64,000 bases of DNA from Iphione sp. A-MEVVRFRX5. Lineage: Eukaryota. The stretch spans positions 62,248,001-62,312,000 of the forward strand of contig OZ320316.1 in the NCBI GenBank assembly GCA_976226885.1. The letters run 5' to 3'. The notes under the pieces were generated by a model. That model worked only from the letters and a program-made list of their open reading frames with translations, searched no databases and was not told where the DNA came from. A program made the position numbers and the translations under genes. The stretch's first letter is position 1. Each line of letters opens with the position of its first letter. Shown here one piece after another: positions 5,314-58,038 of the stretch.

Positions 5314-5363
5314 ATGTTTCGCATTGCCTGTTTTTTAGGCCTTCTTGTGTTTCTGTGTTATGT
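5314..5363 (+). CDS. Gene A candidate exon 1 (signal peptide MFRIACFLGLLVFLCYV)
   Basis: ATG at 5314, hydrophobic signal-like peptide and phase-2 donor GT|GTGAGG matching the phase-2 acceptor at 8223. It follows a CpG-rich segment (about 5100-5280). Additional small exons between here and 8223 cannot be excluded. Confidence 0.5.
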
Positions 5364-8222: not shown

Positions 8223-8308
8223 CAATAAGAGCACTATCACTAAGGTGATCGAAGGATTACTGAACCGGAAAGACTATGACAAGCATATGAGGCCTGGTAT
8301 TGATCAAG
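8223..8308 (+). CDS. Gene A exon 2 (N-terminal helix, NKSTITKVIEGLLNRKDYDKHMRPGIDQ)
   Basis: Acceptor ttttttcag, donor AG|gtaggg; YDxxxRP motif of pLGIC extracellular domains. Confidence 0.9.
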
Positions 8309-11854: not shown

Positions 11855-11922
11855 AAGAGAACACCATAGTGTACGTCGACATTTACGTCATAAGCCTTAG
11901 TTCGTTCAACGACAAAGACATG
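11855..11922 (+). CDS. Gene A exon 3 (68 nt; EENTIVYVDIYVISLSSFNDKDM)
   Basis: Acceptor tctctttccttcag, donor ATG|gtgagt; the 68-nt size is typical of this exon in GlyR/GABA-A genes. Confidence 0.92.
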
Positions 11923-13078: not shown

Positions 13079-13302
13079 GACTTCTCAGTGGACATGTACC
13101 TGCGTCAAACGTGGCGCGATTCCCGTCTGTCCTACGAGCAGTACCACAACAAGAGCATCACACTCAACTATGACCACTTCTCTATGATTTGGGTGCCGGA
13201 TCTGTTCTTCCGAAATGCTAAAAGAGGCATGTTCCACACGCTCACCGTGCCGAACCGACTGCTCCGTATATGGCCCAACGGAACTATCCTATACAGCCAG
13301 AG
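13079..13302 (+). CDS. Gene A exon 4 (224 nt; loops D, A, E)
   Basis: DFSVDMYLRQTWRD...WVPDLFFRNAK...NGTILYSQR; acceptor catctag, donor AG|gtacgt. Confidence 0.95.
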
Positions 13303-16300
13303 GTACGTTATGCTTATATCCTTGTCTGTTATTTACAATAAACCTCTAAATAGGAATTGATGCATGGGGAGACCAAGGGATAGACATCTCAAATTGCTGC
13401 TGATGCGAAAACACTATTCAAGGCTCTTGGAAAGAGTTGGGACCAATCCGACCATAAGAATGGGTTAAGTGTCTACCAAATAGCCTATGCGAGCAACCGT
13501 CCTCTCCGCTTACAGCTCATATCAGGCATTCCTTTTTCCACACTCTTGCTCTGGGCTTTTATTAGAAATATTAAATTCACAGCGAATATTAAGAAGGGTC
13601 AGCCATTTGTCATGGATGCTCAGTTCCCACAGCCTCCTAGTTGTCTGCATGTAGTCCAATTTAGACTCGGCTCATCAGTTCCCTTCATCGGAAGATAACG
13701 TCGATGGCCGCTTTCACATTGCCGTGGTTTCCTTCATCCAACAAAAGCACTGAGTGCCCTAATGTAACCCCGCTTGACGGCTCATCGCATGGAACGTTAT
13801 ATTACTGGCGAACTCATTAAGGGGTCTTGATTGTGTGTGAATGTCGGCTCCCCCTTATTTGCTACTCACTGGTAATGGTTTGAATGTGGTGGATGGCAAG
13901 GTAGCAGTGCTAATATGTACCGTGAAGATTTCCTATGAAAGGAAGTTGCAGCCCATCTGACAGGTAGTAATGAGCCTGGGCTAGGGTAATGCTATACATT
14001 TCATAGCAGATTGTTTGTAGAGAGTTTGTAGCCATATACTTTTCCGACAAGCGACACGTGCAAACATACTGTTGAAGGTTACCGCATAATCCTGTAAGAA
14101 GTAAGAGAGATATTTTGCAATCCCCTAGCGTACCATTACTATTGCAGTATATCAGAATTCAAGGGATGGTCATGAACTTAAAAAGAAGAAAAACATTGCA
14201 CTGTTCCTCGGACCTACAGGTAGCACAGTAATTGATTCATTAAAGTGATGACAGACTTCACAACTAACGTAACTACAGTTCTTCATTTGTTCTTCAAACA
14301 TCCTTTTCTCTAATTAATATCACGACAAATGATATTGCACGTGAAAGTGTTTTAACTTGTATTGCGGTGCTTGATAAAAACAGCATTCTAACTTAAACGA
14401 TGACACTTAAAACTGATGATCCTACTTAAAATGTCCCCGTTAGTCAAACAGTATGGATAATGATACTACTTAAGGGGTACCCTTTGAGATGGACGATTTG
14501 GTCCAGAAACAAAACAAAGGCCGAGCAGGACAAAATCATTAGGCATGTTACAGAGATAATACAGCGGGAGAGCATGATGCAAAAGAAACAGCCGTAGGTG
14601 CAAAGCCTAAGGGAACGAAGACATTGAGAGTTATGTGTATAGGTACTTGATAGGAAGACAAGCTCGATTGATGCCCATGTAATTATAATCCAGTACAGTA
14701 CAACGATACTGATATCGTCTAATGTAGAAGATTCTCTCCATGTGGACGTAACACGGACTTGCTGAAACTACTAATTTAAACTCCAGCAACAAACGTAGAT
14801 ATCAAACTAGTTTCGTGTCCAACTCAACCAATTGCGCCAAATAGAATTAGCGATTGTGTCTTTATAATTGAACTCACGGTTGTAGACGTAAGAAGTTTCA
14901 CATGTACCGCCACGATTGTCGGGATGCCTCCTCTCTTTGTGTGTTTATTGTTGGCTGGTGCATCTTCAGTTTAAATTGAAATTGGTGAACTATTGTACCT
15001 TTGGCTTGGTTAAATGCCATGAAACACGTCCTTTTCCCGACTTAGCGATCAATAATGAGTGCACGCCGGGTTTCGCCTTCAGAGAAATGTGAAACCTCTT
15101 TGTCGGCAGGGACAAAGAAAACAACCTGCGAGTCCTTTCAATCTCCGCCACCACGCTAATTAAACACATTGATTTGTCCAGGCCTTTCTCTGTAACTTTG
15201 AGGAGTGTGTGCCGGGACGGACGAAGCAACTGCTGCAAGGGTCTCATGGCCACACTCCGACCCCCTGGGGAGTGAACATGGCATCTGTCGATCCCACCAG
15301 ACACGTGCCCGTAGCCTAGCTCCTCCTCCTTCTCCCATTCCTCCTCTTTCTTCTTCTGCTCCCCCTCATGCTTCTGCTTCTGCCCACTCTCCAGCATGCC
15401 GTTGTCCAGTCTGAGAGTTACACAAACGCAAGCAATCTTACCCAACGGAATATTTTGGCGAGAGTTATTTGCAACACTAAAATTTAAACAACGATTCGGG
15501 GATGGATAACTTGGCTATTGGCTCGTCATTGGATTACAATTCAGAGCTTTTTAATTAAAATACACTCATGCCAAAAACTATGCAAACAGATGCCTCTAAA
15601 CTGACACAACTAATTACTAGTTTGGACAATTTAGAATATATTTTAGCACACATATATAAGCACATATTTAGAAACTGTATACATATGATAGGTGCGTCCG
15701 GACTTGTTAACAATAATCTATAGCCCGGAGCGACCATAGATTCTTAATTCACTAAGTAAAGGACTTCAGTTTTGCTTTGAAGATTTGCAATGGCATATCG
15801 ATAAAAAAAGGAAAAATAATATAAATACAATGTGACGGCACTTGTATCCCTATATTCCTCTTCAACTCAGTAATGCCTGTTCTACCCCGCACACGGAAAA
15901 TCAATTATACTCAATCCCTTGGAATGAGAAGTAAAAAGAATATCACACCGAATACTGAAATCCATCCTTGCGGGACCGTTTGGGCGGGAACAAGCAGGCG
16001 CTAGTGAAAGCTGCGTCCTAAAGGCTGCATGATTGATAGCCTGCTCAGCGAAGATTATTCAACTGTCATTTAACGGGCATGGATGCTGCGAGTTGCTCGG
16101 GAGCAAGTACTGATCCTTAACGATTTTAAGCGTTAATGGGCCATCTAGAACTGAGAGCTATTCCTGGTACTTTTAGGACCGGAATGGTCCGATCCGAGAT
16201 CGGTTGCGGATGGGCGGACGACAGGTCGAAAAATTCTGCTCCCCCTACAAGCCAGGCCGTCAGCACACGCCTGGTACACCCTTCATATTCCCAGGGCCTA

Positions 16301-18504
16301 CAATCATCGATAATGATCGCTTCCATGGGTCAATTTGTATCATACTGCTAGTAGGATAAGCAGGAAAACAAAAAAAGACAGATCTGGGTAAGGAATCAAA
16401 GGCTAAGTCGTTTAATACAGTAGACAGGAGGAAAGAAAAAGTTCAGTGAACCTCTTGAATCATACTCATGTGACAGTTTTTTTTCTATTGGATCAACTCA
16501 ATTGAGAAGGACTGATAATAATGTTATTAAAACGTTGTGGCTGTTTTGTCGTCTTGTTTTGTAAGGCTAGAGCGTGCTCATTAAACGAATGATGTTAAAT
16601 GCGTCATTAACCCGGTGATGGTTTCTTTTGAGTCAAGAAGAAATCCTGTAATCAATAAATCGTAATCGGTGATAATTGCACTTTCTACTCTAGCCCGCAG
16701 TGCTTTTTGAAACTGTAATAGTTTCATTAAAATTACATTAACCCCCATAACTAATCAGCTTTTCTTTATCTATGCCAATACCAATCTAAACTGACTCTAT
16801 CTGTTACGTTTGCTGACAAGTGCCACCTGATGTGACTGTCTCTATAGGCTCCACCTTATAAGACTACATGTGGCCACCACAGGTGCCAATGAATATGACT
16901 ATAAACGCTAATTGTTATAATGTAGCTAACAGGAGGCAACCATAGGGAGAAACGGAAGCAGGCGACAGATGGAGGAGATGGAGAGACCAGAGAGTATACA
17001 GAATGGCCCGGCGGAGGAAGGGAGTTACACTTTACATGCAGCAGCCACTCAGGCTGCACACTTGCTCTGAACACTAAAGATGTAGAGCAACGGTGAGAGA
17101 CAGACTTGCAAGCAAAGCAGAAGAGATAATGTGGCACCCATTCTCCAATTAATAGTGTTTTATTTATTGAGTTATTCATAAGTAGATCGCTTGATCTAAT
17201 AGTTTAACTTTCTGTTTACAAATTTCCCTATCTTTCTATTTGCTTGCTTATCTTCCTAGTAACAAGATATAATGAATGGAGAGATACAGGTGTGAAATGG
17301 AGGGCGTGAGGGATGGAAAGGAGGACCGAGGGAGTGGTGGGCAGGGTTGAGGGAGATGGGAGTAGGAGAAAAATGAAAACATGAGAAGACAGGAAATGCG
17401 AGAAAACAAATTATGACGGAGAGACAACACACGTCCTGACAAACATATTTCAGTTGACAGGTAGTGATAGGGGAAGAAGATTAGCATGCCAATAGAGTGA
17501 ACATCCTACCATCATTTTGGCTGCTAATTCCTCATGTATAGCAAAGATGAGGACCAAAAATACATGAATGCATATTTTTGCACCTATACTATCATCGCTC
17601 TGGTTTCAGATTCATGCAAAGTAAAACACCTATAACGCCCCAAATCTCCATGGTTACTAATTAACTCTAACAATGAATACAAACATCATGAAGTAGATAC
17701 CAGCTTAAAATTATATTGAAATTATACATTCGTCAATCATAGACTCATCATGCTTTTAGAAGTGTAGGTGAAGTGCGTTATTTCAAGTATTGGATTGATA
17801 AGTCATGGGTTGTGGTGGGGTCGAACACTTGTTTTAGCTAGAGCAACAAAGCAAATAAAGTGCAGGTCTTCCTCCAGACTGTCAAGGGAAGACGCACATG
17901 GTGACACTTTTATAGCACTTCTAACACTAAGAATAAAATTTATTATCAGTATCACTTTTTAATCCTTTTACTAGGGGGAAGCATGGTGATGAACTGAACT
18001 GTCATAAGCGCAGGTACATAAGGCACGAAATACAATATAAGAAAAGGAGAAATGACTTGTAAGAGATCATACGTATACCTATGGAATGGAAAAGAGTGCA
18101 GCAGGTCAGGTATAACATTTAAAGAAATAATATGTAACATTTCTAACATATCTCTTTGTTACATTTTCATAATACCTTTGAATTCTCTAGAAATCCAACT
18201 AACATTTCTTTGTGTAGACTTTGGGGTTCAATATAGAGTGTCTTGGACCTGACCTACTGACATGTGAACATTATACTGATTACACAACAGCATAAGGAAA
18301 CTGCTTCTTACCTACTTCCTGCCATTAGAAATTTCTCAGCTGAGATGTCAGCCTCTAAGGATGCTCTCTCCTGCTCCACTATGTGTGAATCCACGACCGT
18401 ATAATTTGCTTTTAAGTTAAATGAGCTTTGTGTGTGTCTTAGAGTCGTATGGTTTGTGTTTTTCTGAATTCTCAGTAAATAATATCGCAGAAAGGACAAG
18501 ATCA

Positions 18505-19223
18505 TTTCTAAAAACGTTTCCCTAAAAATCTTGAAAATGTTTTTGAAAATGTTTTAAAACATTAAAGTGGTGTAAAAACATTTTCAAAATGTTTTTGAAA
18601 ATCATTTAAAAATGTTTTCAGAAAACATTTTCAAATGTTTTCCAAAACATTTTAAAGCTATTTCTATAAAACCTTAATTTCAAAACTTTAAAAAGTTCTT
18701 ATTTTCTCTTCATGTATACTTTTATCTTCTAAATAGTCTTTTCTTGTGTAATTTCACTTTTTATAGAGGAGTGTTTTAGTTTTTCCATGATTTGAGATAT
18801 TGACTTGTTGGGGATTTGAACCCATGTCTTCTGCATTACTGGTGGTGCTTTTATCCATTTAGCCACTGAGTCTGCCTATTCTTAGCTGTGTAAATATATT
18901 GCCATCACTCCTGACCTCCTTTTCAAGACTTTTCAAAAAGTTATTCAAATGTTTTAAAAACATTATTCCATAATATCATCTGGAGCCTTTTGGAGATATT
19001 TTAATAACATTCTGAAAACATTGTAAAAACATTATTTTACAACATTATCTGGAGCCTTTTTGAAATCTTTTTAAAATGTTGTGAAAACATTGTAAAATCA
19101 TTATTTCATATTATCTGCAGCTTTTTTGAGATCTTTCAAAACTATTGTGAAAACATCGTTAAAACGTTATTTCATATCATTTGCAGCCTTTTTGAGATGT
19201 TGTGAAAACATGTGTTTGCTAGG
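18505..19223. repeat. AT-rich repeat element built from AAAATGTTTT/AAAACATT subrepeats, with a tRNA-derived core; ends ...GTGTTTGCTAGG
   Basis: Many direct and inverted copies of the AAAATGTTTT motif and tandem (TCTGGAGCC/TGCAGC)TTTTTGAGAT units; probable non-autonomous DNA element. Confidence 0.6.
18802..18872 (-). repeat. tRNA-derived sequence (A box GTGGCTAAATGG, B box GGTTCAAATCC); not a functional tRNA
   Basis: 71 nt with Pol III A/B boxes at tRNA spacing; only 4 of 7 acceptor pairs and a degenerate anticodon arm. Confidence 0.55.
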
Positions 19224-20475
19224 ATATCAGAGTGAACAGGCAACAGAATCAGGGAAAGGATATCATGGGACATATTAAGCTCAATTTGCCATGTAGCCGT
19301 GTTTCTGGCACAAATACGGGACCTGTAACTCAAGGAATGTACCCATATATCGGTTCATATTTGGTTGTGCTCACGAATGTGGGAAATGAATGGGAGTTGT
19401 CCCATTTTTCATAGTCACAGGTACATGTATCCAATCATCAAAACAAGTGTGGTGTGGGGGAAATCGGGAAAATGACTGTCTTTTCCAAAAGGTATAGTCC
19501 CAAATCGCTAATAATTTGCATTAGGTTTTCAAGTTATTGCAACCCAACAAATTATTATTTTCTTTTTTCCGTTATCCATTTTTTCCTTTCTATAAAGCTT
19601 TATGCGACCGTTTGTCCGATAGCAATCTAACAACAAAATAGTATGTTGAGAGGAATACTCTCAATCACATTCGCTTTACCTGTGACATTTACCCCGTACT
19701 AGTTACCTTCTCTCTCAATCGTAAGTCATACCTTTAACTTGAATCTTTACCTTTAAATGGTCTCTCAATGCCGAACGTGCCGAACTGACAACATAAACAT
19801 TTCCTTAAGACGAGGTAGTATAGCTTGTCTCGCCCGGTCATTAATGTCCTACCTCTGACCTAAGCCCTTCTACGACGACCGAACGTCTCTCCTTCGAATT
19901 AAACCCAATTTGATTTCCTTTTTCTTCAAAAATAAGCAGGAAACAATCAGATGATATCACCTACTGTTGACAGCACTGCATTAAAGTGGCATTGCTATGA
20001 TTGGATAGCATTGATTTGAAACTACAATCTTTCTTGCGAATGTCGTTTGAACCTTTCTTCATGACTGCTAAGAAGTGAAATTGTTCTGTATTTCTTGAAA
20101 GAAACGCAAAGTTAGGGTCTATATGCTGCAATATAATTGGAAAAGGGGGTCTACGGTAAAGTTAACGACAGTGTATAAACCGTATGTATGTCATAATACA
20201 ATAGGCTGGTACTTTCATAGATATAAAACCACAATGTTTGGTTCTCAATGCTGCATGAAAAATGGTCATTTGCCAATTCCTCTCTGTCTCATTCCAATTG
20301 AATACATGTATGTAAATCAACAGGCAATCACTTCCCTTGTTGGATACCAGGTATAAATCAAGAGGAAATATCTTTCTCAATATAGCATTTCCTTTTAGGT
20401 CATAACGTAAAACGTAACGCCAGCTTCTACCATATTCTACCAAGAAAAATTATTTGTGTTTATCTCCTTCTCCAG

Positions 20476-20558
20476 ACTCTCTTTGGTTCTCGGTTGCGAC
20501 ATGCACTTGGAAAAGTTTCCAATGGACAACCAGACATGCGACATTAACATCGGCAGTT
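20476..20558 (+). CDS. Gene A exon 5 (83 nt; Cys-loop CDMHLEKFPMDNQTC)
   Basis: C-x13-C with FPMD; acceptor ctccttctccag, donor T|gtaagt; canonical 83-nt Cys-loop exon. Missed by the ORF track. Confidence 0.95.
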
Positions 20559-22337
20559 GTAAGTAGCATCCTTAAAATAAGTTTCTACGGTCAAAACATA
20601 AGGACTGTCATATCGAAAGCAAATGTTATAGTCTATGTTTTTGTCCTCCATGATAGCGAAAATGTTTATATTTGGACAGGCTGTAACAGTCTTCTTTGTT
20701 CTCTTTGCCCCTTACGTGTTAACACACACTGGCACGGTGACAAGGATGAGCACCATGCTGGCAAGGTGGCTACAAAGCTTTGATAAATTCTTTCTTCACT
20801 AAGATACTATGCTCCTACTCTGTTTATTACAAGAACATGAGGTACAGATATTATCACAATGTTATGCTGCATTATTCACTTTCTCTTGAAGATGGGCTAG
20901 ACTTGAACCCTGATAAGGGAGGGATCGTTGGCCCCTTTCTCCTTGATATCACTAATTATAGTTTGCTCCACCCTTATACATTATTACCTCGGCATGGAGC
21001 GCCTTAAGTGCGTTACGCTCGCCCATCTAACAATTCGATCCCGGCCTCCTCGGACCGACCAGCATGGCTGCGACATTTGAACAGACGGTTTCGGACGAAA
21101 ATTGATTAGGCCTCGTAGAATCGGGCATGCTTTCCACTTCATTAATTAGAGAAGATTTCGCTCTGCCATTACGTCTACGACACATGGATTTTGTCTCAAC
21201 GTATTGACATGCTCAGATCGAGCAAGGGATCAGATGGTACTCATTAAATGACAGCCCAGCTGTCACTGCCAGATTAAAAGACGCCTCCTTCGTGATGGCT
21301 GTAATGATTGAGGCAATATACAACATATTCTATTAAAGTCGCATCAAGCACGGCGTACTGAAATTGACGCAACGATATGTATTCACGGCCGTTTCGTGCG
21401 AATGCATATTAATAAGTGAAAGGTTACTAGGTACATGCTAGTTGGTGTTGAAACAAGGTAATCCACGTACGTTGTATGGTATTCTGGTACTGACCTTGTG
21501 ACATTTGAATGTAGAGCCAGGGTTTCATGTTGTCTTGTATAATATTGCAACTATCCAAAGACTGTGGAGAGTTATGGAAGAACTACTATAACGAACGATT
21601 ACTTTTGTTTATTGGTGATCAGTGCCCCCAATGAGAAGGACTATGTTTCTTTTAGTTAGACACACAATTCAGACAGCCTCTTTCTATAGGATGTTTCCGG
21701 TTTCATCAAAGTAAGGCTCTACAGTTAAATTCTTAAATGCCCGGCGACATAACAGTATTAAATATTGTTATATATACATGAACTTAGGTGGCTATTTCGC
21801 ACATATGCAGTGATGGAGGTTGCTCAAAGCGTCAGTTCACATGCCCATCTGAGAACATTAAATATCTCACCTCTACAATATCCGAGGTATCTCTGTGTGG
21901 TTATCTGACAGTATATGGGCAGTGCGTTTTTGTCGAGGAGTGCTCTGTCCTGACAAGGCCAATCGATTCCCTTGTGTCCGTCTCCCATTATTACTTTGAA
22001 GTCGACATTGCGCCATAACGGAAGATAGAAAGCACACACAACAAAACATCAAACTCAAAGCGAAATATCTGGATATCACTGGCGGATACTCTCGACAGTC
22101 TGGCTATAGTTATAGTTTAAGTATGCTGCGATCCTCTCGGGAACATTATTTTTCCTGTGTAATTAAAGTCTGAGATTCCTCCAAGAAAGTGTCATAATAA
22201 AATATCCCATTGCTCTTATCTACAAACGGCCAGCATGTCGAGGTCGATGGTTGCGGTTGAGGAACGTTTGTTATTTCTGAATCTAGTGGGTTTTCCATAT
22301 TGATATTTTTTTAAATTTACAACGCTTAATCTTACAG

Positions 22338-22481
22338 ATGGCTATACTACCGATGAGGTAGACTTCATTTGGAACCCTATGAAGACAACGCCTCTTAATA
22401 TGAAGGACGACATATCGCTAGCAGAGTTTCTTATAACCGGCGCGTCAGCAGAATCGTGTGGCAAGAAGAAGTTCTCTACAG
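22338..22481 (+). CDS. Gene A exon 6 (144 nt; loop B end, loop F, loop C start)
   Basis: YGYTTDEVDFIWNPMKTTPLNMKDDISLAEFLITGASAESCGKKKFST; acceptor cttacag, donor G|gtaagc. Confidence 0.93.
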
Positions 22482-24289: not shown

Positions 24290-24795
24290 GGGCGTTTGCT
24301 TGTCTGCGGGCGGAATTTCATCTAAAGCGTCAGTTCGAGTACTACTTCCTACAAACCTTTCTGCCGAGTGCTCTCGTCGTCATGTTATCGTGGGTATCTT
24401 TTTGGATTGACATCGAGGCCGTGCCGGCGCGTATCACTCTTGGCTTGCTGACCATCCTCACCATGACCACCCAGGCTTCCTCTATCAGCGAGCGATTGCC
24501 GCGAGTTTCCTACGTCAAGGCCATTGATGTGTGGATGGCCATGTGTCTTGTCATGGTATTTGGGGCTCTAATCGAATATTCAACTGTCAACGTTCTGTTC
24601 CGCAAGGACAAGGCTTCCAGTAAGAAGATGCAAATGGCGGCAGCGAATCGGGTGCCGCCAAGGTCGCCAGAAGGGGGTGGTGTCAAGGACAAGCTACTGA
24701 TGGACAACGACCTACCAGACCACCACGAAGCTGCACTGCACAGCCGCCACTCAAGCAAGGTGTCAACGCCCACCAGCGGGATGCCTCAGCCACAG
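24290..24795 (+). CDS. Gene A exon 7 (506 nt; loop C end, M1, M2, M3, start of M3-M4 loop)
   Basis: GAFACLRAEFHLKRQFEYYFLQTFLPS...[18 protein letters not shown]...LPRVSYVKAIDVWMAMC; acceptor tttatcag, donor CAG|gtgaga. Confidence 0.96.
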
Positions 24796-29550: not shown

Positions 29551-29799
29551 GTGAATAACAATCACAACTGCAATAACCCGAAGGAGGGCCCGGCGTCACC
29601 GACGTTAGAGCGGTTGCCGTACCAGGTGGCCGGCTCCAGGTCTCCTTCCGGCGACATGGATCATGATGAGAACGAAGGGCGGCGCGCCTGCTGTACCCAG
29701 GGGCGCGCGCTGCTCGTCGACGTCGTCTCCCGCGTTGCGTTCCCGATGAGTTTCGTCGCTTTCAATTTCGCCTACTGGACCTACTACCTGACGACATAG
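29551..29799 (+). CDS. Gene A last exon (M3-M4 loop end, M4, stop)
   Basis: Acceptor ccattgcag; ...VDVVSRVAFPMSFVAFNFAYWTYYLTT*, matching the typical D-x-x-S-R-x-x-F-P...FN-x-x-YW M4 pattern. Confidence 0.93.
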   Translation: MNNNHNCNNPKEGPASPTLERLPYQVAGSRSPSGDMDHDENEGRRACCTQGRALLVDVVSRVAFPMSFVAFNFAYWTYYLTT

Positions 29800-46906: not shown

Positions 46907-46974
46907 GTGAACGAACCGTTGTGTCGGTTGATATCTTCATCAACAGTGTGGACTCCATCAGTGTTGATACTATG
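46907..46974 (+). CDS. Gene B exon 3 (68 nt; GERTVVSVDIFINSVDSISVDTM)
   Basis: Acceptor tgtgacag, donor ATG|gttagt. Confidence 0.92.
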
Positions 46975-47584
46975 GTTAGTGTGTTCATTCACGGTAGACT
47001 GTTTGCTCTTGGCATGAGTATGGAATGAGGAACAATGATCTATATTAATCACATTTGAGAACATTTGTCGCAATAGAACTAAACAAATGAAAACTGAATG
47101 ATTCATTTCAAACTAATGTCACATTACGAATATCATTACGTTGCACAACCTGTGGCCAGAACTGTATCAACTCAACCACCTCATAATGCACAATTCAAAT
47201 TGAATATCGCCAGCATACCGTTTGCCTAATAGCCGCAAAATAGTGACAACAAGGACACGAATTTAATCTAGTATGCATATAATGAAGGGAAAGAATCAAG
47301 ATGAAGCATCGTACAGGTTGTCGGTGTGTATCTTGTGTAGGACTATTTTGTGAACGTTATAACCACTGGTTTCCTACATTGGAAGACACACCAGTCATTA
47401 TTAGGAAGCCATATATTAGATTGGTCGAACGGGAAAGGGTTAGCGGAGCTGGACAGCACGATTACAATCTGGCGATGGTAAACGAGTAAAATAAAACAGT
47501 AACGGTACTGGGTATATGACTGCTTGAGACCTCTGCAGCAGTGACAAATTGGTTCATTTACATGTATGTATGTCTCTAACAAAA

Positions 47585-48200
47585 TTGATGTCAATGCATC
47601 AAAAAATATATATTGTTCAGTAAAACTCGACAAAATGTTAGAATTCTAACTATTAATCAACAATGACATGATTCAAGGTACTATAACTTATAACTAACTA
47701 GGGGTCACAATAGATAACAAGCTAAATTCAAGAGCCATCAATGCAATATCCCTTAGGTGGGATAGCCAAAAAACTGCTCATTGAAAATCCAACGTAAGAT
47801 ATTGAACACAGCAACAGCCCTGAAAATTGTGTGTAATATGATAAAACCAATTGTAAGCTATAGCAGTGTGATTGTCACAAAATCAACTGAGGGCTCCTGG
47901 TGCAAACTGAAATAGGCTCTTCTGTGTTTATATAAGATAGCCCTAGATAAAAATTACAAACCTTTGTACAAAAAAAAATTGAGTCAGCTAAAAATCCCTG
48001 CCATTAAAAATAGAAGAATGTTTTTCCATGCATCACTAGCACATAGTAGAGACCTCAGGAGAGATAACCATTTCCAGCCCCAGGTGCACCCAGGTAGGCA
48101 AGGATTGTATATGAAAGCATCCAGGCCAAAAAAAAGAATGTTTCAAACATTCATGCCTTTATCAAAGCATACAGAGATGGAACCAACTTCCCCTTTCCCT
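47585..48200 (+). mobile_element. Degenerate CR1/L2-type LINE 3' fragment in gene B intron 3
   Basis: Translates across stops and frameshifts as ...YN*LGVTIDNKL..., IKPIVSYSSV... and terminal ...AYRDWNQLP. Confidence 0.7.
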
Positions 48201-51124
48201 TAGGCAGACAAACTCTCTAACAAAGTTCATAATAGAGGTTAAAAAAGTATTACACAAATATGCTCAGGAGAACTACTAGTTCCTTGAGTTAAAGCCATAA
48301 ATATCTGTAACAATGGTGTACCAAACAAACAACAATGTGTACCTAGATGCCCATGGGACAGGATCAATGTACTCATACATCTTGTGCCTCTCATTGTAAA
48401 TATCATATTTGTATATATGTAAATATGTGTCATTTATATATTATTGTACCACCATCCATACCATTCACACAATCAAAAAAAGGGTAATTGAACAATACTG
48501 ATTTACATTAAAATAGGGTTGGATAACCCTCTCATTTTAAACAGCAATCCTGTTGTGCATTTTAATGGGTTATTTATTTTGTTGTGTAGTTTTTCATGAA
48601 TTCTTTGCTGAGTTGTTCATTCTTTCATGACTTATTCATGCTGTCATGTAATTATTTATGAGTTATTTACAGTTGTGCAGTTTTGTCCTGTTGTGTAGTT
48701 TGTCATGAATCACGCTACACAAAACACCTTGATACAATGGGGGAAACAACAGTAAATGGCAAAAAAGCAGGAAACAACACAACACAAGCACAACCAAAAG
48801 GGCATCCCCGTGCATTCCCATATGTGATTATAGTCAATGATAATGCAAAGGAACCTTATACAAATGCATTAATGCAAGTATGGAAACTGGCCCCTGTGTA
48901 CTGAAGTCTCTGGGTTCCTCCCTACGGTAATGGGTTGATTGCCGTTTTTCTGTCATTCCGATGTAAAATTATGTTGTTTATATTCACGGTAAAATTTACG
49001 TCATTTACATTGTGAGTTAATTAAGCTAGAAAAACAAGTTCTAGCTCATATTCTTTCTTAGAAACTCGATTAGCTTTAATTTGGTTAAAGTTTTATCAAA
49101 ATCTGACCATTAGGAGTTGATTATTTGGGCTTAGAAAGATACCTCCTATCTTCATTTTTCTACAGGCAGCATGTAGGCTGTCATAGTCTGAGGTAGGACT
49201 GACTGTCATAGCCTTGCTACCAGTTACACCGATTATTTTTATGGTGCAACGTAATTCGGCGATGGGTTCATTGATCAACAGAAAGAGTCTATCTCAAAGT
49301 GATGCAACGCTCATGTCAAACGAATAAGGATGTAGGAGGACTTGCAACAGCTGCGGGATTGATTTTGTTTTAGATTTTTATTCCGTCATACCTATTACGT
49401 ATATATTTACACGTACATCTTTGGAAGCCCCAAGTACATATACACTAATTGTCTTTTTGTATTTGTGCTGAGATCACATGGATTGCATGTTTTCTTGACT
49501 ATAGGATAGGTCCCAACCAAGGAATGAGGATTCTGCTTTGTGATAATTCAACTAGGGGAAGCAAAGGTACTCCCATGAAAACTTAGGCTTGATAGTTTGT
49601 AAGCTACCTGCCTTTGCCTCTACCACCTACCCTGACCTTTCCTATGTGTCCTGATACTTCATTATCTACCCGCCCATTTTCCTTACCTGCAGGAGACCGT
49701 GGGAGCCTGTGGGAGGTGGGTGAGTGTGAGCATATGTGGACAATTATCCGGACCCTCACACACCGGGGTATCCATGATAATGTGCATGTGTGTGCGTGCG
49801 TGGCAGTGCATGTGGGTCTTGAGGGTCTTGGTTTAGAGGATGGATCTTGGGGGTCTTGTTTTAGAGGATGGGTTGCGAGTGTATCTATGTTGGATATATG
49901 AAAGACGGTGAATTTGCTCTGAAAAAGTACAAAAAGAGGCGAATTGGAATATGTATGAAAAGTGATGAATTCGATGGGGACATGTGCAGATGTGTGGATG
50001 TGCAGAATCATATTATTTTAATTAAACTTAATGTTCTTCAAAGACTATCTGCCGTATACTAATAGAGCCGTAGGCTGCGGGTGCGTGAAATTGTGAGACT
50101 GACCGAATAGGAGCATATGCAAGGCAATGCAAGGTAACACAAGGTAACACACCTGGACACCGTTGCAGGTAAGGAAACCCCACAATGAAATCTACCTGTT
50201 CTATAAATGTGCACTACAGCACACTACAATGAACACAGACAGCTCCGTAAGTAAGGAAACCTGGCCTTACTCACATTTCTGCTGACCTACTCATACACAC
50301 TCCACATCCCTGGTCCAGGGGGTAAAGTCCATAGAGCAAACATCTGCTTGGGCACACGTCTTGCGACATAAAAAAAAAGCTGGAACCAATATTCTAGGGC
50401 AAAGGAAACAGCGGGAAAGTAGATGCTACGCAATGTATGCAGATACGTAACAAATAGAAACTGGAACAAAAAAGCCCATTAACATGAGCGATAGGTGGGA
50501 AGAACCGGTTTGATGGACGCCGTATACCTACACGTAGTGGACAAGGTGATTCATTTGGTTTAAGGTGGAGAGATCGGACGTCAGACTTCAGAACTCATAC
50601 ATGGGCCAAGTGGTGCCCAGTTCCATCCGAGATGTAAGTCAGCGCATGCGTCTTCTGCGCGAGGCACGGACTACGCAGCAGCTTCCCTCCGCCTAGCATA
50701 ACGCTTCAACTAACCAGTGCGCCTTGTAAAAAACTATGTTATGCGGAAGTGACTTTGAGAAGATTCTCTTCCAAACTTATCCATTAATACGACGTATAGA
50801 CCACACTCAAATAAGACCCTTAACCAGTATTACTCAATATCCAAATGTATGCATACAGTTCCTCATTCTTTCGGTTAGTGTTCTGTTTTTATTTCCTTTA
50901 TTTAAAGTCCTAGCATGACTAGTTTGATTTTAAATTTAAAATTGGATTGGAAATCTGTGATGCGAATATCAGAGGTAACACTCTGTCAGAGCATTACGAA
51001 ATCAATTATTTTTCAAAAGTAATACCACATATACGGTAGATGGATTTAGAATTAATCTCTTATTGTTACTACAAATAAACCACTACAAAATATATACTGA
51101 ATGTTACTTTCCTTGCCTTTTCAG

Positions 51125-51354
51125 GATTACTCCCTTAATCTGTACATGCGCCAAACATGGGTAGATGAGCGTCTACAATACAATGAGACGGAGCTAGGCG
51201 TGGACAGACTGATACTTGATCATAGGCTTTACAATGAGATCTGGGTGCCCGATCTCTTCTTCAGCAATGAAAAGCGGTCCAACATTCACTGTGTGACCGT
51301 GCCCAACAGTATGATACGCATCTACTCTAATGGGACAGTGCTCTACAGTGCAAG
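51125..51354 (+). CDS. Gene B exon 4 (230 nt; loops D, A, E)
   Basis: DYSLNLYMRQTWVDERL...IWVPDLFFSNEK...NGTVLYSAR; donor AG|gtaagt. Confidence 0.95.
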
Positions 51355-52135
51355 GTAAGTCGTTTGGGTGTGAGGTGCATGTGAAATTCAATTAAAATTT
51401 ATCGAGGATAATGCAACATATGTGCAGAGAATTCTGTCTTATTGTAACAGCATGTGCTACCAAGTCCTAAAAAGAATCTATGTTTCTGGTAACAAGCTGA
51501 AAAAATAGAGTGAGTAGGTAGGTGGCATTTGCTTGATTTTTCTTATTTTTTTCATCTAAGTTCAAAATGACAATAACACATGTATATGGCAATATCACTT
51601 ACACTGCCTAGAGTTTTAAAAAACCAGTAGTGTGTAAACGCTAGTGATTTAGATAAAAAAAGGTCTGCTGTATGAGTCTCTAGCTTCCTTTATTCTGAAG
51701 ATTCACAAAACAATACAAAAAATAATAAGTTGCAAATGCCCAAATATTAGGGTCGATTGGTACACATATTTCTTTAATAGGCCTAAGCTCGAGGTTCCGA
51801 CCTGTGGTGCGATAAGCAATTGAAACAATACTATGGTCAGTAATAAGACCGACACCATATTGCGCTGAATATCAAATCTGTGATTCTCCAAATACGTACC
51901 AACGATTTTTTTTCAATGTAAACAGGTTCATGTTTGAATCAAAGGAGAGTGAAAGCCCAGCAGTGGCCCCACTTGATTCGCCAAACAATGCTGAGATGTC
52001 TAGATAAGTGCAGAGAAAATATCATGTATATAATATATTTGGATCACACTTATGTCGCTGGATCAGAGCAGTGACCTAGCTGATAGGTGAATTGACTATA
52101 TCCTCAGTGCACACTGTCTAATGTATTTTTTCCAG

Positions 52136-52218
52136 GTACACTTTGGGTCTGGTGTGCTACATGAATCTCCGAAACTTCCCTTTGGATAGACAATATTGTT
52201 TCATAAAAATCGAAAGCT
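52136..52218 (+). CDS. Gene B exon 5 (83 nt; Cys-loop CYMNLRNFPLDRQYC)
   Basis: C-x13-C; acceptor ttttttccag, donor T|gtaagt. Confidence 0.95.
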
Positions 52219-52589
52219 GTAAGTATTGGTCACTTAACATTGCCATCCATCTACGCGTAGTTCTGTTTGCATTGCACTACCAGGGATTCCGTGACCAATG
52301 CACCCCACACTGACACCATAAAACATTAATCAACAGTTTCCAAGGGCACCGGGCGCACTAAAACGTTTATATGACGAATTTCCAACGTCGCTCGACAGAT
52401 TGCGTGAATGTAGAAGGGGACAAACAATGATGGAAGAGGGTAGGGGAACTGATGAAAGCGTACAGGGCATGACCAACAGAGCATTAAGTAGTGATAGCGG
52501 CAACAGGCCCGTATGTGTGTGAGCGTATTCTAGATATAGGATCTCATATTCAAGAGAGGAAATGACAACGAAAGAATGTTAAACGCGAG

Positions 52590-53259
52590 GTTTCTCAAGA
52601 TGATTCTAAATATCTCCACTTCAGACATTACCTCTAAATGTAAAAGTTTTTTAAACATGTCTACAACGTTGCAGTGAAAGTCAGAAAAAAACTTTCCTGA
52701 CACCATGACAAAACTAAAAATTCTCACTTTCCAATGCTGGATTTGAACCCACTTTCTCAAATTCTAAGTCCACCACCTTATCTACTGATCTATTTGAAAA
52801 CTCCTTATCTTCATTGTCGAATGTAACCAAACTACACTCTAGAGAAATAATTAAACAAACTACAATATTCTAGGCCTGTTTCATCCTAATATTACTTAAA
52901 TATCATGACTTAGATCAATTAACACTCACATATTTTATCATTTTCATCTCACCTAAGCTAACTACAATGTCATAGACACTTATTATGTGATGTTATCTGA
53001 AAGTTGTTATTTGTTACAATATTCTAGGCCTCTTTTATCCTAATATTACTTAAAATTTAATTAAATGACTTAAGCCAATTAATATTTATATATTTTATCA
53101 AAACTTTTTCAAACTTAACCAAACTTAATGTTGTAGACATGTATGTAATTATTAATGTTATCTGAAAGTTGTGATTTAATGTTTATACAATGTTGTGTCA
53201 AGGTATTTTTCTAACCTAACCAAACTACAATGTTATAGATATGTTGTGTGTTAGCTGGG
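52590..53259. repeat. AT-rich repeat element with tandem subrepeats (TACAATATTCTAGGCCT x2, AACTACAATGT..TAGAC x3) and a tRNA-derived core; ends ...GTGTTAGCTGGG
   Basis: Direct reading of the subrepeats; same layout as 18505-19223. Confidence 0.55.
52727..52799 (-). repeat. tRNA-derived sequence (degenerate A box, B box GGTTCAAATCC)
   Basis: About 73 nt with 6 of 7 acceptor-like pairs but broken T and anticodon stems. Confidence 0.5.
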
Positions 53260-55634
53260 CTCCAACGTACCAACAGGCAAACTTGCTGCGCCGTGCGATA
53301 CATTTATTCTACATCAATCTTGCCGCAAACTCATGACGGAGAGAGCAATTAACGAAGTGGTGTTTCCGGCAAATCAGTATCTAATCCGAATCTACTGGGT
53401 TGGACGTATAATGATCACGGCCATTACCGCTAGAGCACTTTGCTCGGAGAAGTACGTACATGTATGAGTTCGTGAGAGGCACTCGTCCCTTAGGTGATAG
53501 AGCCGTGCGTTATCCCGCGCAGTGGGTGGTATAGACAACACTGGCAATTGAATATAACCCACGTCCCAACGGTGAGCTACCTCTAATTCAGGCATTAAAG
53601 TTGGGCATTCTGTCAACATGAAAGCTGCTGACAAAGAGAGGGGAAAGCAATTCAGCAGTTGCTGTCAAATAACAGACGGTCGATGACCCACCAGCGATGT
53701 GAAGATCATATGATGTGTAGGCACTGAGGACACCACTAAAACGTGTTTGTTCCAACAAAACCGGTAGTCAACAAATGTTTATTCTGGATTTTCCCATTGC
53801 GGTTTGTGTTTAAAGAAACAGAACCAATAATGAGGACACACCAATATAAATCGCCAAGTAACATCACTGATGAAATGCAGTTCAGAGGGATAATAGGTGA
53901 CCAAAATAGTTTTTTATATTCATCGTTTTTATCTGCTAGTGATGCAAGATCAAACATGTATAAGAAGAAAGAAATGACCAAATTTTCAGTGACCTCAGCA
54001 CTGTCATTAGTAGTATACAGCAAAAGTATGTCCAGGGAATTGTCCGGCATCAGCGGTTCAGCCAAGGGAATTCAAACAATGATTTGATAATACAGCATGT
54101 CATAATGGATTAGACGGTATGTAAGCCTCGTTTCTTGTCATCGTGAGGCACGAACGTCCCTCGAAGTAAACAACTTCCAAAATAAGTTCTTGTCGCTAAT
54201 CGCCTTTCTATGCCGCACGTGGAAATATTTGGTGTGAGACGATGAGGTGGGAGAGTTTCAATTCCAGCAGCGGTTGATGATTTTTCTTCTGCACATTATG
54301 GTAATCCAGCGATGACGCAGTATAGACCCTCGTTTCTTATAGTCAACAAGCGCCTTTGGCGTCTGCACTGGTTGATTAGAGTGTGTCTGTAGCATGGTGT
54401 GTTTGTGTGTGTGGAGGATCAGAGACTGGGGATGGGGGAAGGGGCAAAGTACAGACTCATCTGGCCTTTTACAACCTTGGTTCTACTTCACTTATCAGAG
54501 GGGGGTAGGAATACACCACTCTGTGTTGAAAGTAGGGCCACACAGTAGGGACTACTTTTGGGCAACATTTTATAAGGGTAGTGTAATAACTACGGGTGAC
54601 TGATTGTTCCAAAAGCTTGGGTGACTCAGTGCGTTTACAATAAATCTAAATTTCATTATTAGAAAGCTAATACCTGTACCAAACAATATACTAAGTGATT
54701 ATCACACAACACCAAACGGTGGCCGAGATGTGTAAGACCGCAGTATGATCCATTGCAAGCTCTCAGATTTTTATCATGCCACACTTATGTCTGCTGCATT
54801 ACTAACACAGCACAACACAAATACCATACCCAGTAAAGGACCATCTAATCTTTGGAAGATTTATTTGCATGAATAGATATTTGCATGACTTCAAATTCAC
54901 AATCATCAGGCATATATGTCTTGCAGGAGGTATACACTGTAACATGTCTTGAACGGATGAAAAATTATGTCAGTATCTCGTTTAAGTTTAAAGAATAAAA
55001 TTTATAAGTAAAATCTAGTTAACTGCATGTACACAACATCAAGGTGCATGTTAGGTGTGACCATCAGAGCCCTAAAGGCTTTTACAACAGGGTCATGATA
55101 TTTTGCAATCACAATTGTGCAAGACCTTCCTTGATCACGGCAACCACAGGCCAGAAGCTGGAAGTGGGAGGCTGGCATATCGGAGTGCATTCCGGTATTC
55201 CAAACTCTGGTGTGGCTAACTGCCATGATGTAGTATCCGTGCTGGACAGGACATGGTACTCCATCCACCACAATAATTATATACTAGATATCATATCAAA
55301 CATTTTTTCGATCCTGAGAATAGAGTCTCTGGAGCTGGCGGCAAGGGTTTGGTAGTACCTAAAGTCGCTACACCAACCTCTTCTAATTATTTCTAATACT
55401 TTACATATTTTGCGAGGTCAGTTGTCACTTTGTTTTCTCTTATAGGACAATAACTGCATCCAATATAGACATAATCAATGCATCCGGTAGTCTGAGAATG
55501 AGCCACCTCGGGATTACTGCTTGTTTTCCTTTATATATCAGCTTTTGCGATGCGTGATTAACTTCGTATACTTCTGTTCCGTTCTGTTCCGTTTCTAAAC
55601 CATTTGCTCATATTTACACTGGCTCTGATTCTAG

Positions 55635-55769
55635 ATGGTCACACCATGGATGAGATGATATTAGAGTGGCGCGCAGTCGATCCAGTACAGACAAGTGAAG
55701 ACTTGGAACTTCCACAGTTTAATCTAATACGAACAACTACGGAGGGATGTACCAAGTCCTACATCACGG
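55635..55769 (+). CDS. Gene B exon 6 (YGHTMDEMILEW...LELPQF...CTKSYIT)
   Basis: Acceptor ctgattctag, donor G|gtaggc. Confidence 0.93.
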
Positions 55770-55880
55770 GTAGGCTCTTTGTGTGAAACAAGTTTCTAAT
55801 TGGAAATGATACTTAGTTATCATTGGTCCAACTTAGGTAGACGAGGTTTGGCATTTAAAAGTAATATTTTGTTTGTTCAG

Positions 55881-56110
55881 GTTCCTACGCCTGTTTGAAG
55901 GCGACAACTTTATTAGAGCGGCAGTACGGTTACTACATGATCCAGACATACGTGCCAAGCTTGCTGATTGTTTCTCTATCCTGGGTGTCCTTTTGGATCA
56001 ACATGGACGCCGTACCGGCGCGCATCACGCTGGGTGTGCTCACTGTGCTCACGCTGACCACACAGTGCGTAGGCGTCTGGATGTCTCTGCCACGAGTCTC
56101 TTACATCAAG
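55881..56110 (+). CDS. Gene B exon 7 (loop C end, M1, M2)
   Basis: [27 protein letters not shown]...[33 protein letters not shown]; donor AAG|gtaatg. Confidence 0.95.
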
Positions 56111-57213
56111 GTAATGTCCCTCCTGCCTTCATCGTTCTCCAACCGGCCCAGCGCTGTTTAAATAATCATATCATGACAAATAGAAACTATTTGCTTGGGC
56201 ACTTGGCCATTGAACTATTACGGGTTGACGTTTGTACTGCTGACAAATGTATCAATTCCGTACACATTTCATTTGCATGGGTTACCCTCAGCTGGATTAT
56301 ATTTATTCTGATCACATTTCATACATCTGCAATGTATATGCCAATAACTTCCAGTGAAGATAACATGGACACTAATGGACATAGAATCCAACCAATTTGT
56401 CCACTGACCAAACTGTTACAATCTAAGGTGCTTAATGTAAAAATAAACAGTCCTGTAAGGTGCTGTTTTGACAGTTTTAAGTGTCACTTTATGGTAAACT
56501 CTGAAATTCTCGTACAACATGTGGTTACAGTATCATACTGTTGAGTCAATAACAAACAATAAGTTGTAACTACTTATAAATTGGCATAAGAAATTAAATG
56601 TATACTCTATGTTTTATCATAACATGATGGACTATGATGTGATATTTTAAATAAGCATAACGAATGGGGAAAATGTGTAAATACGTGATTTAACCTAATA
56701 TGAATAGCATGTAACGTTAAGTTTATATGCATTTTGCTGTAACAGTATAGTGGTGTCTGTATGGATTACCAGTATAGTGCAATTGTCTAACAGTATACCA
56801 TATGATATATTTATTTATGTAATGCTAAACAATAACAACACTATATATACTGTGCTAGTGGCACCAATAGTAATGTACCATTATTTTACAGTCAATGCTT
56901 TAGAGTGTCCAGAGAAATGATATCATAGAATGGATCCTGCATGCTTAACACTTTTGTTATTATGCAGACCGATTTATCTTCAAATTTTCATTGATGACTG
57001 CGTATTTTTATTGCGTGGGTGGGCTGTATTTCCCAGGAGAAATCCTTGTTAGCTTGAAACTTCAAGCCAACTTGTTTGCTCTCTCTTTTCCAATATAAAT
57101 TACAAAATAATCTAGGCGTTCTAATATGCCCGGCGATTTGAGGGCATGTGCATATATTTTTATATATATATATTACGGTTGATCTCCCTAATGCTATTTT
57201 TCTCCCCTAACAG

Positions 57214-57372
57214 GCTATTGATATATGGATGTCGATGTGTGTAGTGATGGTGTTTGCTGCCATGCTGGAGTTCGCCATTGTAAACACCTTGGGGCGACAG
57301 GAGATTCGGCGCATGAGTCAAAAAGCAAGGTCTAAAGCAAATGACGCCGAGGGGTCGGTTCCATCAGATATG
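57214..57372 (+). CDS. Gene B exon 8 (M3 and loop start)
   Basis: Acceptor cccctaacag; AIDIWMSMCVVMVFAAMLEFAIVN...; probable donor ATG|gttcgt (weak, exact end less certain). Confidence 0.85.
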
Positions 57373-57876: not shown

Positions 57877-58038
57877 ATAAAGCGAATGATGGACGAGTAC
57901 CAGTATGGTACACCTCAGATCTTTGACCCTAACAGCCGACAAATAGCCAGGCGTATCGACAAACTTGCCAGGAAAGCATTTCCTATTTTTTTCATAAGCT
58001 TTAATATTGTCTACTGGTGTTTCTTTCTCATAAATTAA
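57877..58038 (+). CDS. Gene B last exon (M4, stop)
   Basis: Acceptor atttgcag; ...ARRIDKLARKAFPIFFISFNIVYWCFFLIN*. AATAAA at 58037 and 58107. Confidence 0.93.
   Translation: MKRMMDEYQYGTPQIFDPNSRQIARRIDKLARKAFPIFFISFNIVYWCFFLIN

Follow-up and report, generated by a model that had tools for sequence, protein, structure and literature searches.

Lophotrochozoan and ecdysozoan glutamate-gated chloride channels (GluCls) differ in the position of a key Arg. Loop A carries it in all lophotrochozoan GluCls and loop G in the ecdysozoan ones (Lynagh et al. 2015; PMC4338433), a rule that the first-pass annotation of the present locus had quoted correctly. In GluCls, loop B must also begin with a small uncharged residue (PMC4338433). 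Introduction of an Arg at loop A restored glutamate gating in AVR-14B R76N, a Glu at the loop-B position (A197E) abolished glutamate gating in a GluCl, and replacement of the AVR-14B loop-C Tyr by Phe had no significant effect (PMC4338433).

The functionally verified members of the 'Schistosoma-like' (S-like) group include SmGluCl-2 and SmGluCl-3 of Schistosoma mansoni, which are ivermectin-insensitive. Their genes have a single exon (PMC3757052). SmGluCl-2.2 (AGV21041.1; P0439 in our sequence set) is glutamate-gated, with response curves that match those of SmGluCl-2.1, for which the EC50 is about 12 µM (PMC3757052). In annelids, HroP83631 was named a subunit of the S-like GluCl clade by Lynagh et al. 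2015 (PMC4338433). The annelid class considered here comprises such sequences as Helobdella robusta HroP83631, Hirudo verbana 'putative GABA receptor 12' and Paralvinella LSH36_407g01041; our literature search turned up no functional assay on any of its annelid members. Here we describe gene A, and its tandem paralogue gene B, in a window of 64,000 nucleotides, the whole stretch of DNA analysed.

Structure and conservation of gene A

Gene A spans positions 8223-29799 of the + strand; a first exon is tentatively placed at 5314-5363. Joining of its exons within the window yields a spliced, intact Cys-loop anion-channel gene with at least seven exons:

5314..5363, + strand: tentative exon 1; start codon and signal-peptide-like MFRIACFLGLLVFLCY; donor GT/GTGAGG, in a phase that fits exon 2
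8223..8308, + strand: exon 2; N-terminal helix region, NKSTITKVIEGLLNRKDYDKHMRPGIDQ; AG/GT sites, phases match
11855..11922, + strand: exon 3 (68 bp); beta-1 strand and loop G
13079..13302, + strand: exon 4 (224 bp); loops D, A and E; Pfam Neur_chan_LBD, E = 3e-16
20476..20558, + strand: exon 5 (83 bp); Cys-loop (C-x13-C) and start of loop B (NIGS); Neur_chan_LBD, E = 4.5e-06
22338..22481, + strand: exon 6 (144 bp); remainder of loop B (Y-GYTT), loop F and first half of loop C (CGKKKFSTG)
24290..24795, + strand: exon 7 (506 bp); end of loop C (AFAC), M1, M2 with PAR, M3 and start of the intracellular loop; Neur_chan_memb, E = 6.5e-33
29551..29799, + strand: exon 8, the last; remainder of the intracellular loop, M4 and stop codon; C-terminus of Pfam Neur_chan_memb

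AG/GT splice sites, all canonical, are found at every exon from 2 to 8, and the model reads 452 residues without an internal stop. Of the candidates upstream of exon 2, only 5314-5363 combines a hydrophobic N-terminus with a donor in the required phase, and we tentatively infer that it is exon 1. Exon 2 matches the N-terminus of a mollusc homologue in local alignment, and the vertebrate GLRA exon corresponding to exon 3 is also 68 bp long. The exon 7/8 junction could be fixed because the related-species locus L001 keeps the exon 8 start QVNNNHNCNNPKEGP and a second locus, L002, runs into intron after PQPQ. The span first annotated, 13190-22481, takes in only the part of the gene from loop A to the middle of loop C.

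Pfam domains Neur_chan_LBD and Neur_chan_memb (PF02931, PF02932) were matched on exons 4, 5, 7 and 8. The Cys-loop is CDMHLEKFPMDNQTC, with 13 residues between its cysteines, and the model contains four membrane helices, M1-M3 and M4. At the cytoplasmic end of M2, the pore motif AVPARITLG includes the anion-selectivity PAR (24424-24432). A second disulphide loop, C-GKKKFSTGAFA-C, is formed in loop C across exons 6 and 7; such a loop has been named as unique to GlyRs and GluCls (PMC13335744). Gene A fits the Cys-loop (pentameric) ligand-gated anion channels of the GlyR/GABA-A/GluCl branch. GlyR alpha chains were its best solved-structure matches. A PDB search with exon 6 alone, a short and divergent piece, gave no match, and a search of the ESM Atlas with the M1-M3 piece returned only generic clusters of GABA-receptor fragments.

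Comparison with a related species gave a dN/dS of about 0.06, at saturated silent sites (dS ~1.2). Gene A is under strong purifying selection. Exon 6, including CGKKKFSTG, is kept in L001, and the stretch of exon 7 that begins with the end of loop C and closes with M3 is identical in L001 and L002. The introns of gene A and its relative cannot be aligned. Exons 4 and 5 were not found in L001, of which the 7.5 kb upstream of exon 6 were covered. A word search with exon 7 alone returned fragments only, the closest with 85% and 83% identity (ENA assembly, Logan run).

The ligand-binding pocket

Loop A of gene A, WVPDLFFRNAK, begins at position 13190 and its Arg codon lies at 13211-13213. HMMER places it opposite WKPDLFFANEK of the human GlyR alpha-3 and alpha-2 chains, with Arg at the A101 position and Ala at the E103 position; the PDB alignment of exon 4 to GlyR alpha chains has an E value of 1.5e-18. 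Loop B reads NIGS, Y and GY, the Tyr codon being split T/AT between exons 5 and 6, and its Gly codon (20552-20554) stands opposite the Glu of QLESFGY. Loop C, CGKKKFSTGAFAC (CGKKKFSTG/AFAC), crosses the exon 6/7 junction (22457-22481 and 24290-24303) and exceeds the GlyR loop C by one residue. Loop D retains its Arg (YLRQTW, 13103-13105) and loop E its Ser (LYSQR, 13295-13297). The loop-G position is occupied by Ile (11890-11892) where ecdysozoan GluCls have Arg. All these residues, as well as the PAR motif, had been listed in the first-pass annotation and were recovered at their places once the exons were joined. The 'AAA motif', which consists of aromatic residues in loops A, B and C together with a Thr in loop C, is present as Phe (loop A), Tyr (loop B) and Thr-Gly-Ala-Phe (loop C).

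The annelid class shares with gene A the F-x-R-N-x-K and G-S-Y motifs, the Arg of loop D, the Ser of loop E, a loop C that exceeds the GlyR one by a single residue and the PAR pore. It differs in reading F[VI]RNLK and GSYAY where gene A has FFRNAK and GSYGY, and by the Lys-Lys-Lys run of the gene A loop C. This run has no counterpart in verified GluCls. In loop A, gene A carries an Ala where most relatives have Glu and the annelid class has Leu.

Flatworm S-like GluCls resemble gene A in FFRN[GA]K.G, in [NS]IGSYGY and in a lengthened S-[ST]-T-G loop C, and they share the loop-D Arg, the loop-E Ser, the lack of a loop-G Arg and the PAR anion pore. The loops of SmGluCl-2.2 are FFRNGKDG, NIGSYGYT and CSSGYSTSTGQYTC, compared to FFRNAKRG, NIGSYGYT and CGKKKFSTGAFAC in gene A. 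However, overall identity to the flatworm GluCls is only 35-42%, their loop E ends in Gln-Lys and not Gln-Arg, and the single-exon organization of SmGluCl-2 and SmGluCl-3 contrasts with the seven or more exons of gene A.

Ecdysozoan GluCls (C. elegans GLC-1 and GLC-3, H. contortus AVR-14B, Drosophila GluCl-alpha) belong to the superfamily of gene A and share with it the second Cys-loop, a small first residue in loop B, the Arg of loop D and the Ser of loop E; their ligand and ion are those predicted for gene A. In these channels the alpha-carboxyl of glutamate is held by the loop-G Arg, whereas gene A has Ile there and the loop-A position is predicted to be used instead. GlyRs, vertebrate and invertebrate (GlyR alpha, Alvinella Alpo5 and Alpo6), share with gene A the layout of 224-bp and 83-bp exons, the second Cys-loop and 38-39% identity. 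Unlike them, gene A has lost the loop-B Glu (E157 of alpha-1), carries Arg at the A101 position and lies outside the GlyR clade.

The combination of a loop-A Arg with a small loop-B residue was found in 32 of the 193 aligned relatives. These are the annelid class, the GluCls of flatworms, rotifer sequences, three sequences from gastropods, a mite/unnamed pair and two members of the ecdysozoan GluCl clade, both of which also have the loop-G Arg. It is confined to few groups among these 193 relatives and is not a chance pattern. The three gastropod sequences, with FFRNEK and IASYGY, are taken to be Aplysia-like (A-like) GluCls. They have the combination in common with gene A but lie in another lophotrochozoan clade, on the side of gene B, a placement that fits the independent origin described by Lynagh et al.

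Phylogenetic position of genes A and B

Gene B is the tandem paralogue of gene A, with 47% identity to it:

46907..58038, + strand: gene B; exons 46907-46974, 51125-51354, 52136-52218, 55635-55769, 55881-56110, 57214-57372 and 57877-58038

Its pocket is of the GlyR type (FFSNEK, IESYGH, CTKSYITGSYAC), and it forms a clade (100/100) with GlyR-like proteins of nemerteans and one protein of Owenia.

A word search with a Macrostomum protein returned mostly vertebrate GlyRs, and SmGluCl-2 was reached only by a profile search of 50%-identity representatives. In the IQ-TREE phylogeny, gene A and 10 annelid sequences including Helobdella HroP83631 form an annelid-only clade of 11 rows (UFBoot 99 / SH-aLRT 93), every member of which carries F-x-R-N-x-K, G-S-Y and the lengthened loop C. 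Within it, gene A branches outside the other sampled members (Terebellida plus Clitellata). Its closest named relative is HELRODRAFT_83631 (= HroP83631), with 58% identity over 277 residues from the LBD to M3. In the free tree the annelid class adjoins a Paralvinella pair whose loop A has Lys and whose loop B has Glu (92/79), and the backbone linking the class to flatworm GluCls is a polytomy. Constraining an annelid-flatworm clade, which the free tree does not recover, made the tree 9.3 lnL units worse, and the test does not reject this clade (AU p = 0.31). The ecdysozoan (E-like) GluCl clade, including the CBR-GLC-3 cluster, is separate from gene A (100/100), and the chordate GlyR clade, Branchiostoma plus vertebrates, excludes it (100/99).

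Genes A and B are held in a clade supported at 99/94, outside which fall the Branchiostoma, hemichordate and vertebrate GlyR-like proteins. No deuterostome sequence lies inside the clade of either gene, and their near relatives are all annelid, nemertean or other lophotrochozoan proteins. We take the genome to be lophotrochozoan and probably annelid. The first-pass annotation had considered that the locus might come from a deuterostome such as amphioxus and represent an unexpected GluCl there; the phylogeny leads us to reject this origin. Its preference for glutamate over glycine or GABA, by comparison, is upheld as a prediction by the motif, the likeness to SmGluCl-2 and the annelid clade. 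It had also foreseen that, with a known GluCl orthologue in a lophotrochozoan, the prediction would stand and the novelty would be lost, and this is how the matter turned out.

Predicted ligand and alternative readings

Gene A is probably an anion-selective pentameric channel subunit belonging to the annelid class of S-like lophotrochozoan GluCls. Glutamate rather than glycine or GABA is the best-supported prediction from its sequence, because it carries the full motif, its loops are near those of SmGluCl-2 and it groups with the annelid class assigned to the S-like clade. By analogy with the cited mutagenesis and with docking, L-glutamate would bind at the subunit interface. Its amine would sit in an aromatic box made of the loop-A Phe, the loop-B Tyr and the loop-C Phe/Thr, the Arg of loop D and the Ser of loop E would hold its gamma-carboxyl, and the Arg that loop A (FFRNAK) contributes from the principal face would hold its alpha-carboxyl. 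The loop-B Gly would stand in for the Glu that suits glycine or GABA and kills the glutamate response of a GluCl. Opening would then pass chloride through the PAR-type pore and the cell would be inhibited. The sequence data show an intact gene, its motif, its clade with annelid subunits and purifying selection; we infer the ligand, the binding mode and the way in which gene A works, be it by itself or together with another subunit, for instance gene B.

A less probable but possible reading keeps gene A in the same annelid anion-channel class and gives it a natural trigger other than glutamate: protons, as in Alvinella Alv-a1-pHCl, or another acidic or unknown ligand, which the Arg/Gly pocket would serve unless it is partly vestigial. 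Alvinella Alpo7 (= Alv-a1-pHCl) is indeed anionic and proton-activated (PMC4801368; PMC10338036), and its activation was not reported in a screen of Alvinella receptors with 33 compounds including 10 mM L-glutamate (PMC4801368). Moreover, the class differs from flatworm GluCls in loop C and at the x of R-N-x-K in loop A (Leu/Ala versus Gly/Ala), their link is the polytomy described above with an AU p of 0.31 for the joint clade, and a 2026 cnidarian study cautions that reading the ligand from phylogeny is not easy (PMC13335744). However, Alpo7 may lie outside the annelid class; Paralvinella has at least four anionic paralogues among our sequences. Loop B of gene A is identical to that of SmGluCl-2. 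Finally, the six motif positions on which glutamate recognition depends are conserved without exception in gene A and throughout the annelid class, which argues for selection on that pocket.

In a further form of this idea, which we consider unlikely, the annelid class would be a separate functional type, for instance a relative of Alvinella pHCl whose chloride channel senses protons or dicarboxylates. Its Arg/Gly pocket would be kept or convergent, and the Lys-Lys-Lys loop C would tune gene A to another acidic ligand. If true, the 2015 assignment of annelid subunits to GluCls would be wrong.

It is very unlikely that gene A encodes a GlyR-like subunit gated by glycine, GABA or taurine, of the kind of Alvinella Alpo5 and Alpo6, or an accessory subunit of such a receptor that binds no ligand itself and pairs with gene B. 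The best solved-structure matches, the GlyR-like exon structure with its second Cys-loop, the tandem arrangement with a gene whose pocket is of the GlyR type and the existence of glycine-gated channels in annelids (PMC4801368) are compatible with such a subunit. However, the loop-B Glu suited to glycine or GABA is replaced by Gly, at a site that acts as a ligand discriminator since insertion of Glu there ended glutamate gating of a GluCl (PMC4338433), and an Arg lies at the base of the pocket. Gene A also falls outside the chordate GlyR clade (100/99), is separate from the hemichordate sequence and lies outside the clade of gene B. Lastly, a decaying duplicate with drifting pocket residues, a reading that the tentative first exon might suggest, is strongly disfavoured and was rejected, given seven exons with canonical splice sites and no stop codon, a dN/dS of 0.06 at dS ~1.2, identical M1-M3 beside unalignable introns and a pocket motif common to the entire clade.

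Inhibitory glutamate-gated chloride channels have several origins in animals and are drug targets in parasitic worms. Gene A leaves unchanged the view of GluCls as protostome channels, and adds to the channel class predicted for annelids in 2015. That annelid GluCl branch has since been a prediction from sequence, of which gene A is a clean example, intact and conserved, that carries the predicted binding motif in full. The adjacent genes A and B would thus provide a handy pair for asking whether annelids make use of glutamate-gated inhibition and how the loop-A Arg and the loop-B Gly alter the choice of ligand.

Gene models in the window

The eukaryotic DNA of the window contains no N runs and has a G+C content of about 40%. 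Self-comparison of its stop-free segments revealed two pentameric-channel exon sets, both on the forward strand: gene A, the Cys-loop anion-channel gene studied here, at about 8-30 kb, and gene B, its tandem glycine receptor (GlyR)-type paralogue, at about 47-58 kb. Gene A extends beyond the span given in the first-pass annotation (13190-22481), which starts with loop A and stops halfway through loop C.

Exons of gene A, placed by alignment to relatives and splice sites except for the first
5314-5363, +, tentative signal-peptide exon (sole upstream candidate)
8223-8308, +, exon
11855-11922, +, exon
13079-13302, +, exon
20476-20558, +, exon
22338-22481, +, exon
24290-24795, +, exon
29551-29799, +, last exon

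AG and GT flank the seven exons from 8223 to 29799, and their joint frame is unbroken over 452 residues to the stop codon. Pfam locates the ligand-binding and membrane domains on these exons. L001, a locus from a related species, has exons 6, 7 and 8; it keeps CGKKKFSTG, and the stretch that starts where loop C ends and includes M3 is identical to gene A. The intron separating exon 6 from exon 7 yielded no alignment with L001. In L001 conservation restarts exactly at the predicted acceptor of the last exon, and in a second related locus, L002, the open frame continues into the intron past the predicted exon 7 donor. Together these two loci fix where exon 7 is joined to the last exon. Comparison of gene A with L001 over 297 codons gave a dS of about 1.2, which is saturated, a dN of 0.076 and a dN/dS of 0.06. 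Gene A is thus under strong purifying selection. A pseudogene reading is excluded by intactness and selection.

Other features of the window
about 37950-38250 and about 41790-42200, near-identical repeats flanking the retrotransposon
38153-41675, +, retrotransposon in the interval separating gene A from gene B; its ORF encodes a reverse transcriptase (RVT_1, E = 3e-20)
46907-58038, +, gene B
62357-63253, minus strand, 298-residue open frame with Lig_chan (E = 3e-30) and Lig_chan-Glu_bd domain matches (ionotropic glutamate receptor)

Gene B keeps a glycine-receptor-type pocket (FFSNEK, IESYGH, CTKSYITGSYAC). It also keeps an intron at the boundary of the M2-M3 loop and M3; gene A has lost this intron. 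No position was found for the first two exons of gene B. The retrotransposon region has a strong G-over-C skew (about 0.24). By the domain matches of the 298-residue frame, an ionotropic glutamate receptor gene directly follows both chloride-channel genes downstream, in the reverse orientation.

Binding-site residues and their distribution

According to Lynagh et al. [quoted passage not shown] This Arg is supplied by loop G in ecdysozoan GluCls and by the F-F-x-N position of loop A in lophotrochozoan ones. In an AVR-14B mutant without the loop-G Arg, introduction of a loop-A Arg restored glutamate gating. Replacing the first residue of loop B by Glu (A197E) abolished gating (PMC4338433). The rule that the first-pass annotation took as established is the result of this study (PMC4338433).

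All binding-site residues listed in that annotation were recovered. The loop A motif WVPDLFFRNAK is present from 13190. HMMER aligns it gap-free to WKPDLFFANEK of the human GlyR alpha-3 and alpha-2 chains, and therefore the Arg of gene A occupies the A101 position and the Ala that of E103. Loop B consists of NIGS, a Tyr whose codon is split over the exon 5/6 junction, and GY, its Gly facing the Glu of QLESFGY. Loop C exceeds its GlyR counterpart by one residue; exon 6 encodes CGKKKFSTG and exon 7 the remaining AFAC. The loop-D Arg (YLRQTW) and loop-E Ser (LYSQR) are both found, the loop-G position is occupied by Ile, and the PAR pore motif is present.

A word search with exon 7 matched mainly lophotrochozoan fragments. 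Among named sequences, gene A is closest to HELRODRAFT_83631 (HroP83631) from Helobdella, at 58% identity over 277 residues. A profile search of a representative library, combined with cluster look-ups, recovered SmGluCl-2.2 of Schistosoma mansoni (AGV21041.1), several other trematode homologues and a nematode cluster with CBR-GLC-3. The glutamate response curves of SmGluCl-2.2 matched those of SmGluCl-2.1, which has an EC50 of about 12 uM (PMC3757052).

Loop A, loop B and loop C of gene A and relatives
Gene A: FFRNAKRG; NIGSYGYT; CGKKKFSTGAFAC
SmGluCl-2: FFRNGKDG; NIGSYGYT; CSSGYSTSTGQYTC
Calicophoron (trematode): FFRNAKDG; SIGSYGYA; CSIEYSSTGSFSC
Helobdella 83631: FVRNLKAG; ELGSYAYT; CSQQMSSTGNFPC

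The nematode GluCl clade has a loop-G Arg, a loop-A Gln and Ala-Ser-Tyr in loop B. Gene B and vertebrate GlyRs retain the loop-B Glu. Of the 193 aligned relatives, 32 combine a loop-A Arg with a small residue in loop B. They comprise the annelid class (gene A and its annelid relatives), the GluCls of flatworms, rotifer sequences, a mite/unnamed pair, three sequences from gastropods, and two from the ecdysozoan GluCl clade that carry the loop-G Arg as well. The gastropod sequences fit with the Aplysia-like class. The mite/unnamed pair, Varroa destructor P0459 and transcript P0381, has FFRN[VL]K and a loop B that begins with Gly, but lacks the two cysteines of loop C; these arthropod subunits are another lineage with a loop-A Arg. 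Bdelloid rotifer proteins (P0143, P0150 and P0216, from Rotaria and Adineta) carry FFRNAK and NIGSY, the motif of gene A and flatworm GluCls. No mention of rotifer subunits was found in the GluCl papers cited here. Their tree position, beside an Owenia protein with a loop-B Glu, may be unreliable.

Phylogenetic position and host lineage

A tree of 71 rows and 404 columns was computed with IQ-TREE (LG+C20+F+G4 by PMSF), after removal of gene models that were fused or very long and of most duplicates from vertebrates. Gene A is sister to ten annelid sequences (99% ultrafast bootstrap, 93% SH-aLRT). The annelid rows grouped with it, all proteins from annelids, are Paralvinella 407g, three from Helobdella (including 83631), Hirudo 'GABA receptor 12' and six transcripts. 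This class nests in a 46-row clade whose named members are lophotrochozoan or rotifer only, with flatworm GluCls included and a polytomy as backbone. Outside it lie the ecdysozoan GluCls (100/100), the chordate GlyRs of Branchiostoma and vertebrates (100/99) and a hemichordate sequence. Constraining gene A, the annelid class and flatworm GluCls to one clade cost 9.3 log-likelihood units and was not rejected (AU p = 0.31). The tree is therefore compatible with the published Schistosoma-like (S-like) lophotrochozoan clade, of which it is no independent demonstration.

Gene B groups with one protein of the annelid Owenia and two nemertean 'glycine receptor alpha-2-like' proteins, its closest relatives (100/100). 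No deuterostome sequence falls in the clade of either gene in the 71-row tree. Since the relatives are instead annelid and nemertean, the deuterostome host on which the first-pass annotation had made high interest depend does not apply. A host related to Errantia or to early-branching annelids would agree with the branching of gene A outside the Terebellida and Clitellata members of the annelid class.

Two anionic subunits of Paralvinella palmiformis that are close relatives of each other, P0132 and P0136 (KAK2168692.1, KAK2168694.1), with Lys in loop A and Glu in loop B, form the sister group (92/79) of the annelid Arg-Gly class. The two have near-adjacent accessions and lie on one contig, and so tandem arrays of this channel subfamily recur in annelids.

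Predicted ligand

The best reading of gene A, which we hold with moderate confidence, is a glutamate-gated chloride channel subunit. Its loop-A Arg would hold the alpha-carboxyl of the ligand. The gating by glutamate or another acid proposed in the first-pass annotation is, as a prediction, sound. No functional test of a member of the annelid class was found in the literature. The main rival, a trigger other than glutamate, seems to us rather doubtful. It draws on Alpo7 (Alv-a1-pHCl), an anionic Alvinella receptor opened by protons; compounds screened on Alvinella receptors included 10 mM glutamate, and activation of Alpo7 by the screened compounds was not reported (PMC4801368). Loss of the loop-B Glu makes a role as a glycine- or GABA-type receptor unlikely.

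As a putative glutamate-gated subunit, gene A belongs by motif to the lophotrochozoan S-like GluCls and is predicted to work like them. More exactly, it is within the annelid class described from the Helobdella and Capitella genomes in 2015, when four subunits of these annelids, HroP83631 for example, were placed in the S-like clade with the shared motif (PMC4338433). The larger novelty suggested at first, a deuterostome GluCl, is unsupported, and the annelid class itself has been known since that year. Peculiar to gene A are the Lys-Lys-Lys run in loop C, the Ala at the E103 position, the fused M1-M3 exons and the GlyR-type tandem neighbour.
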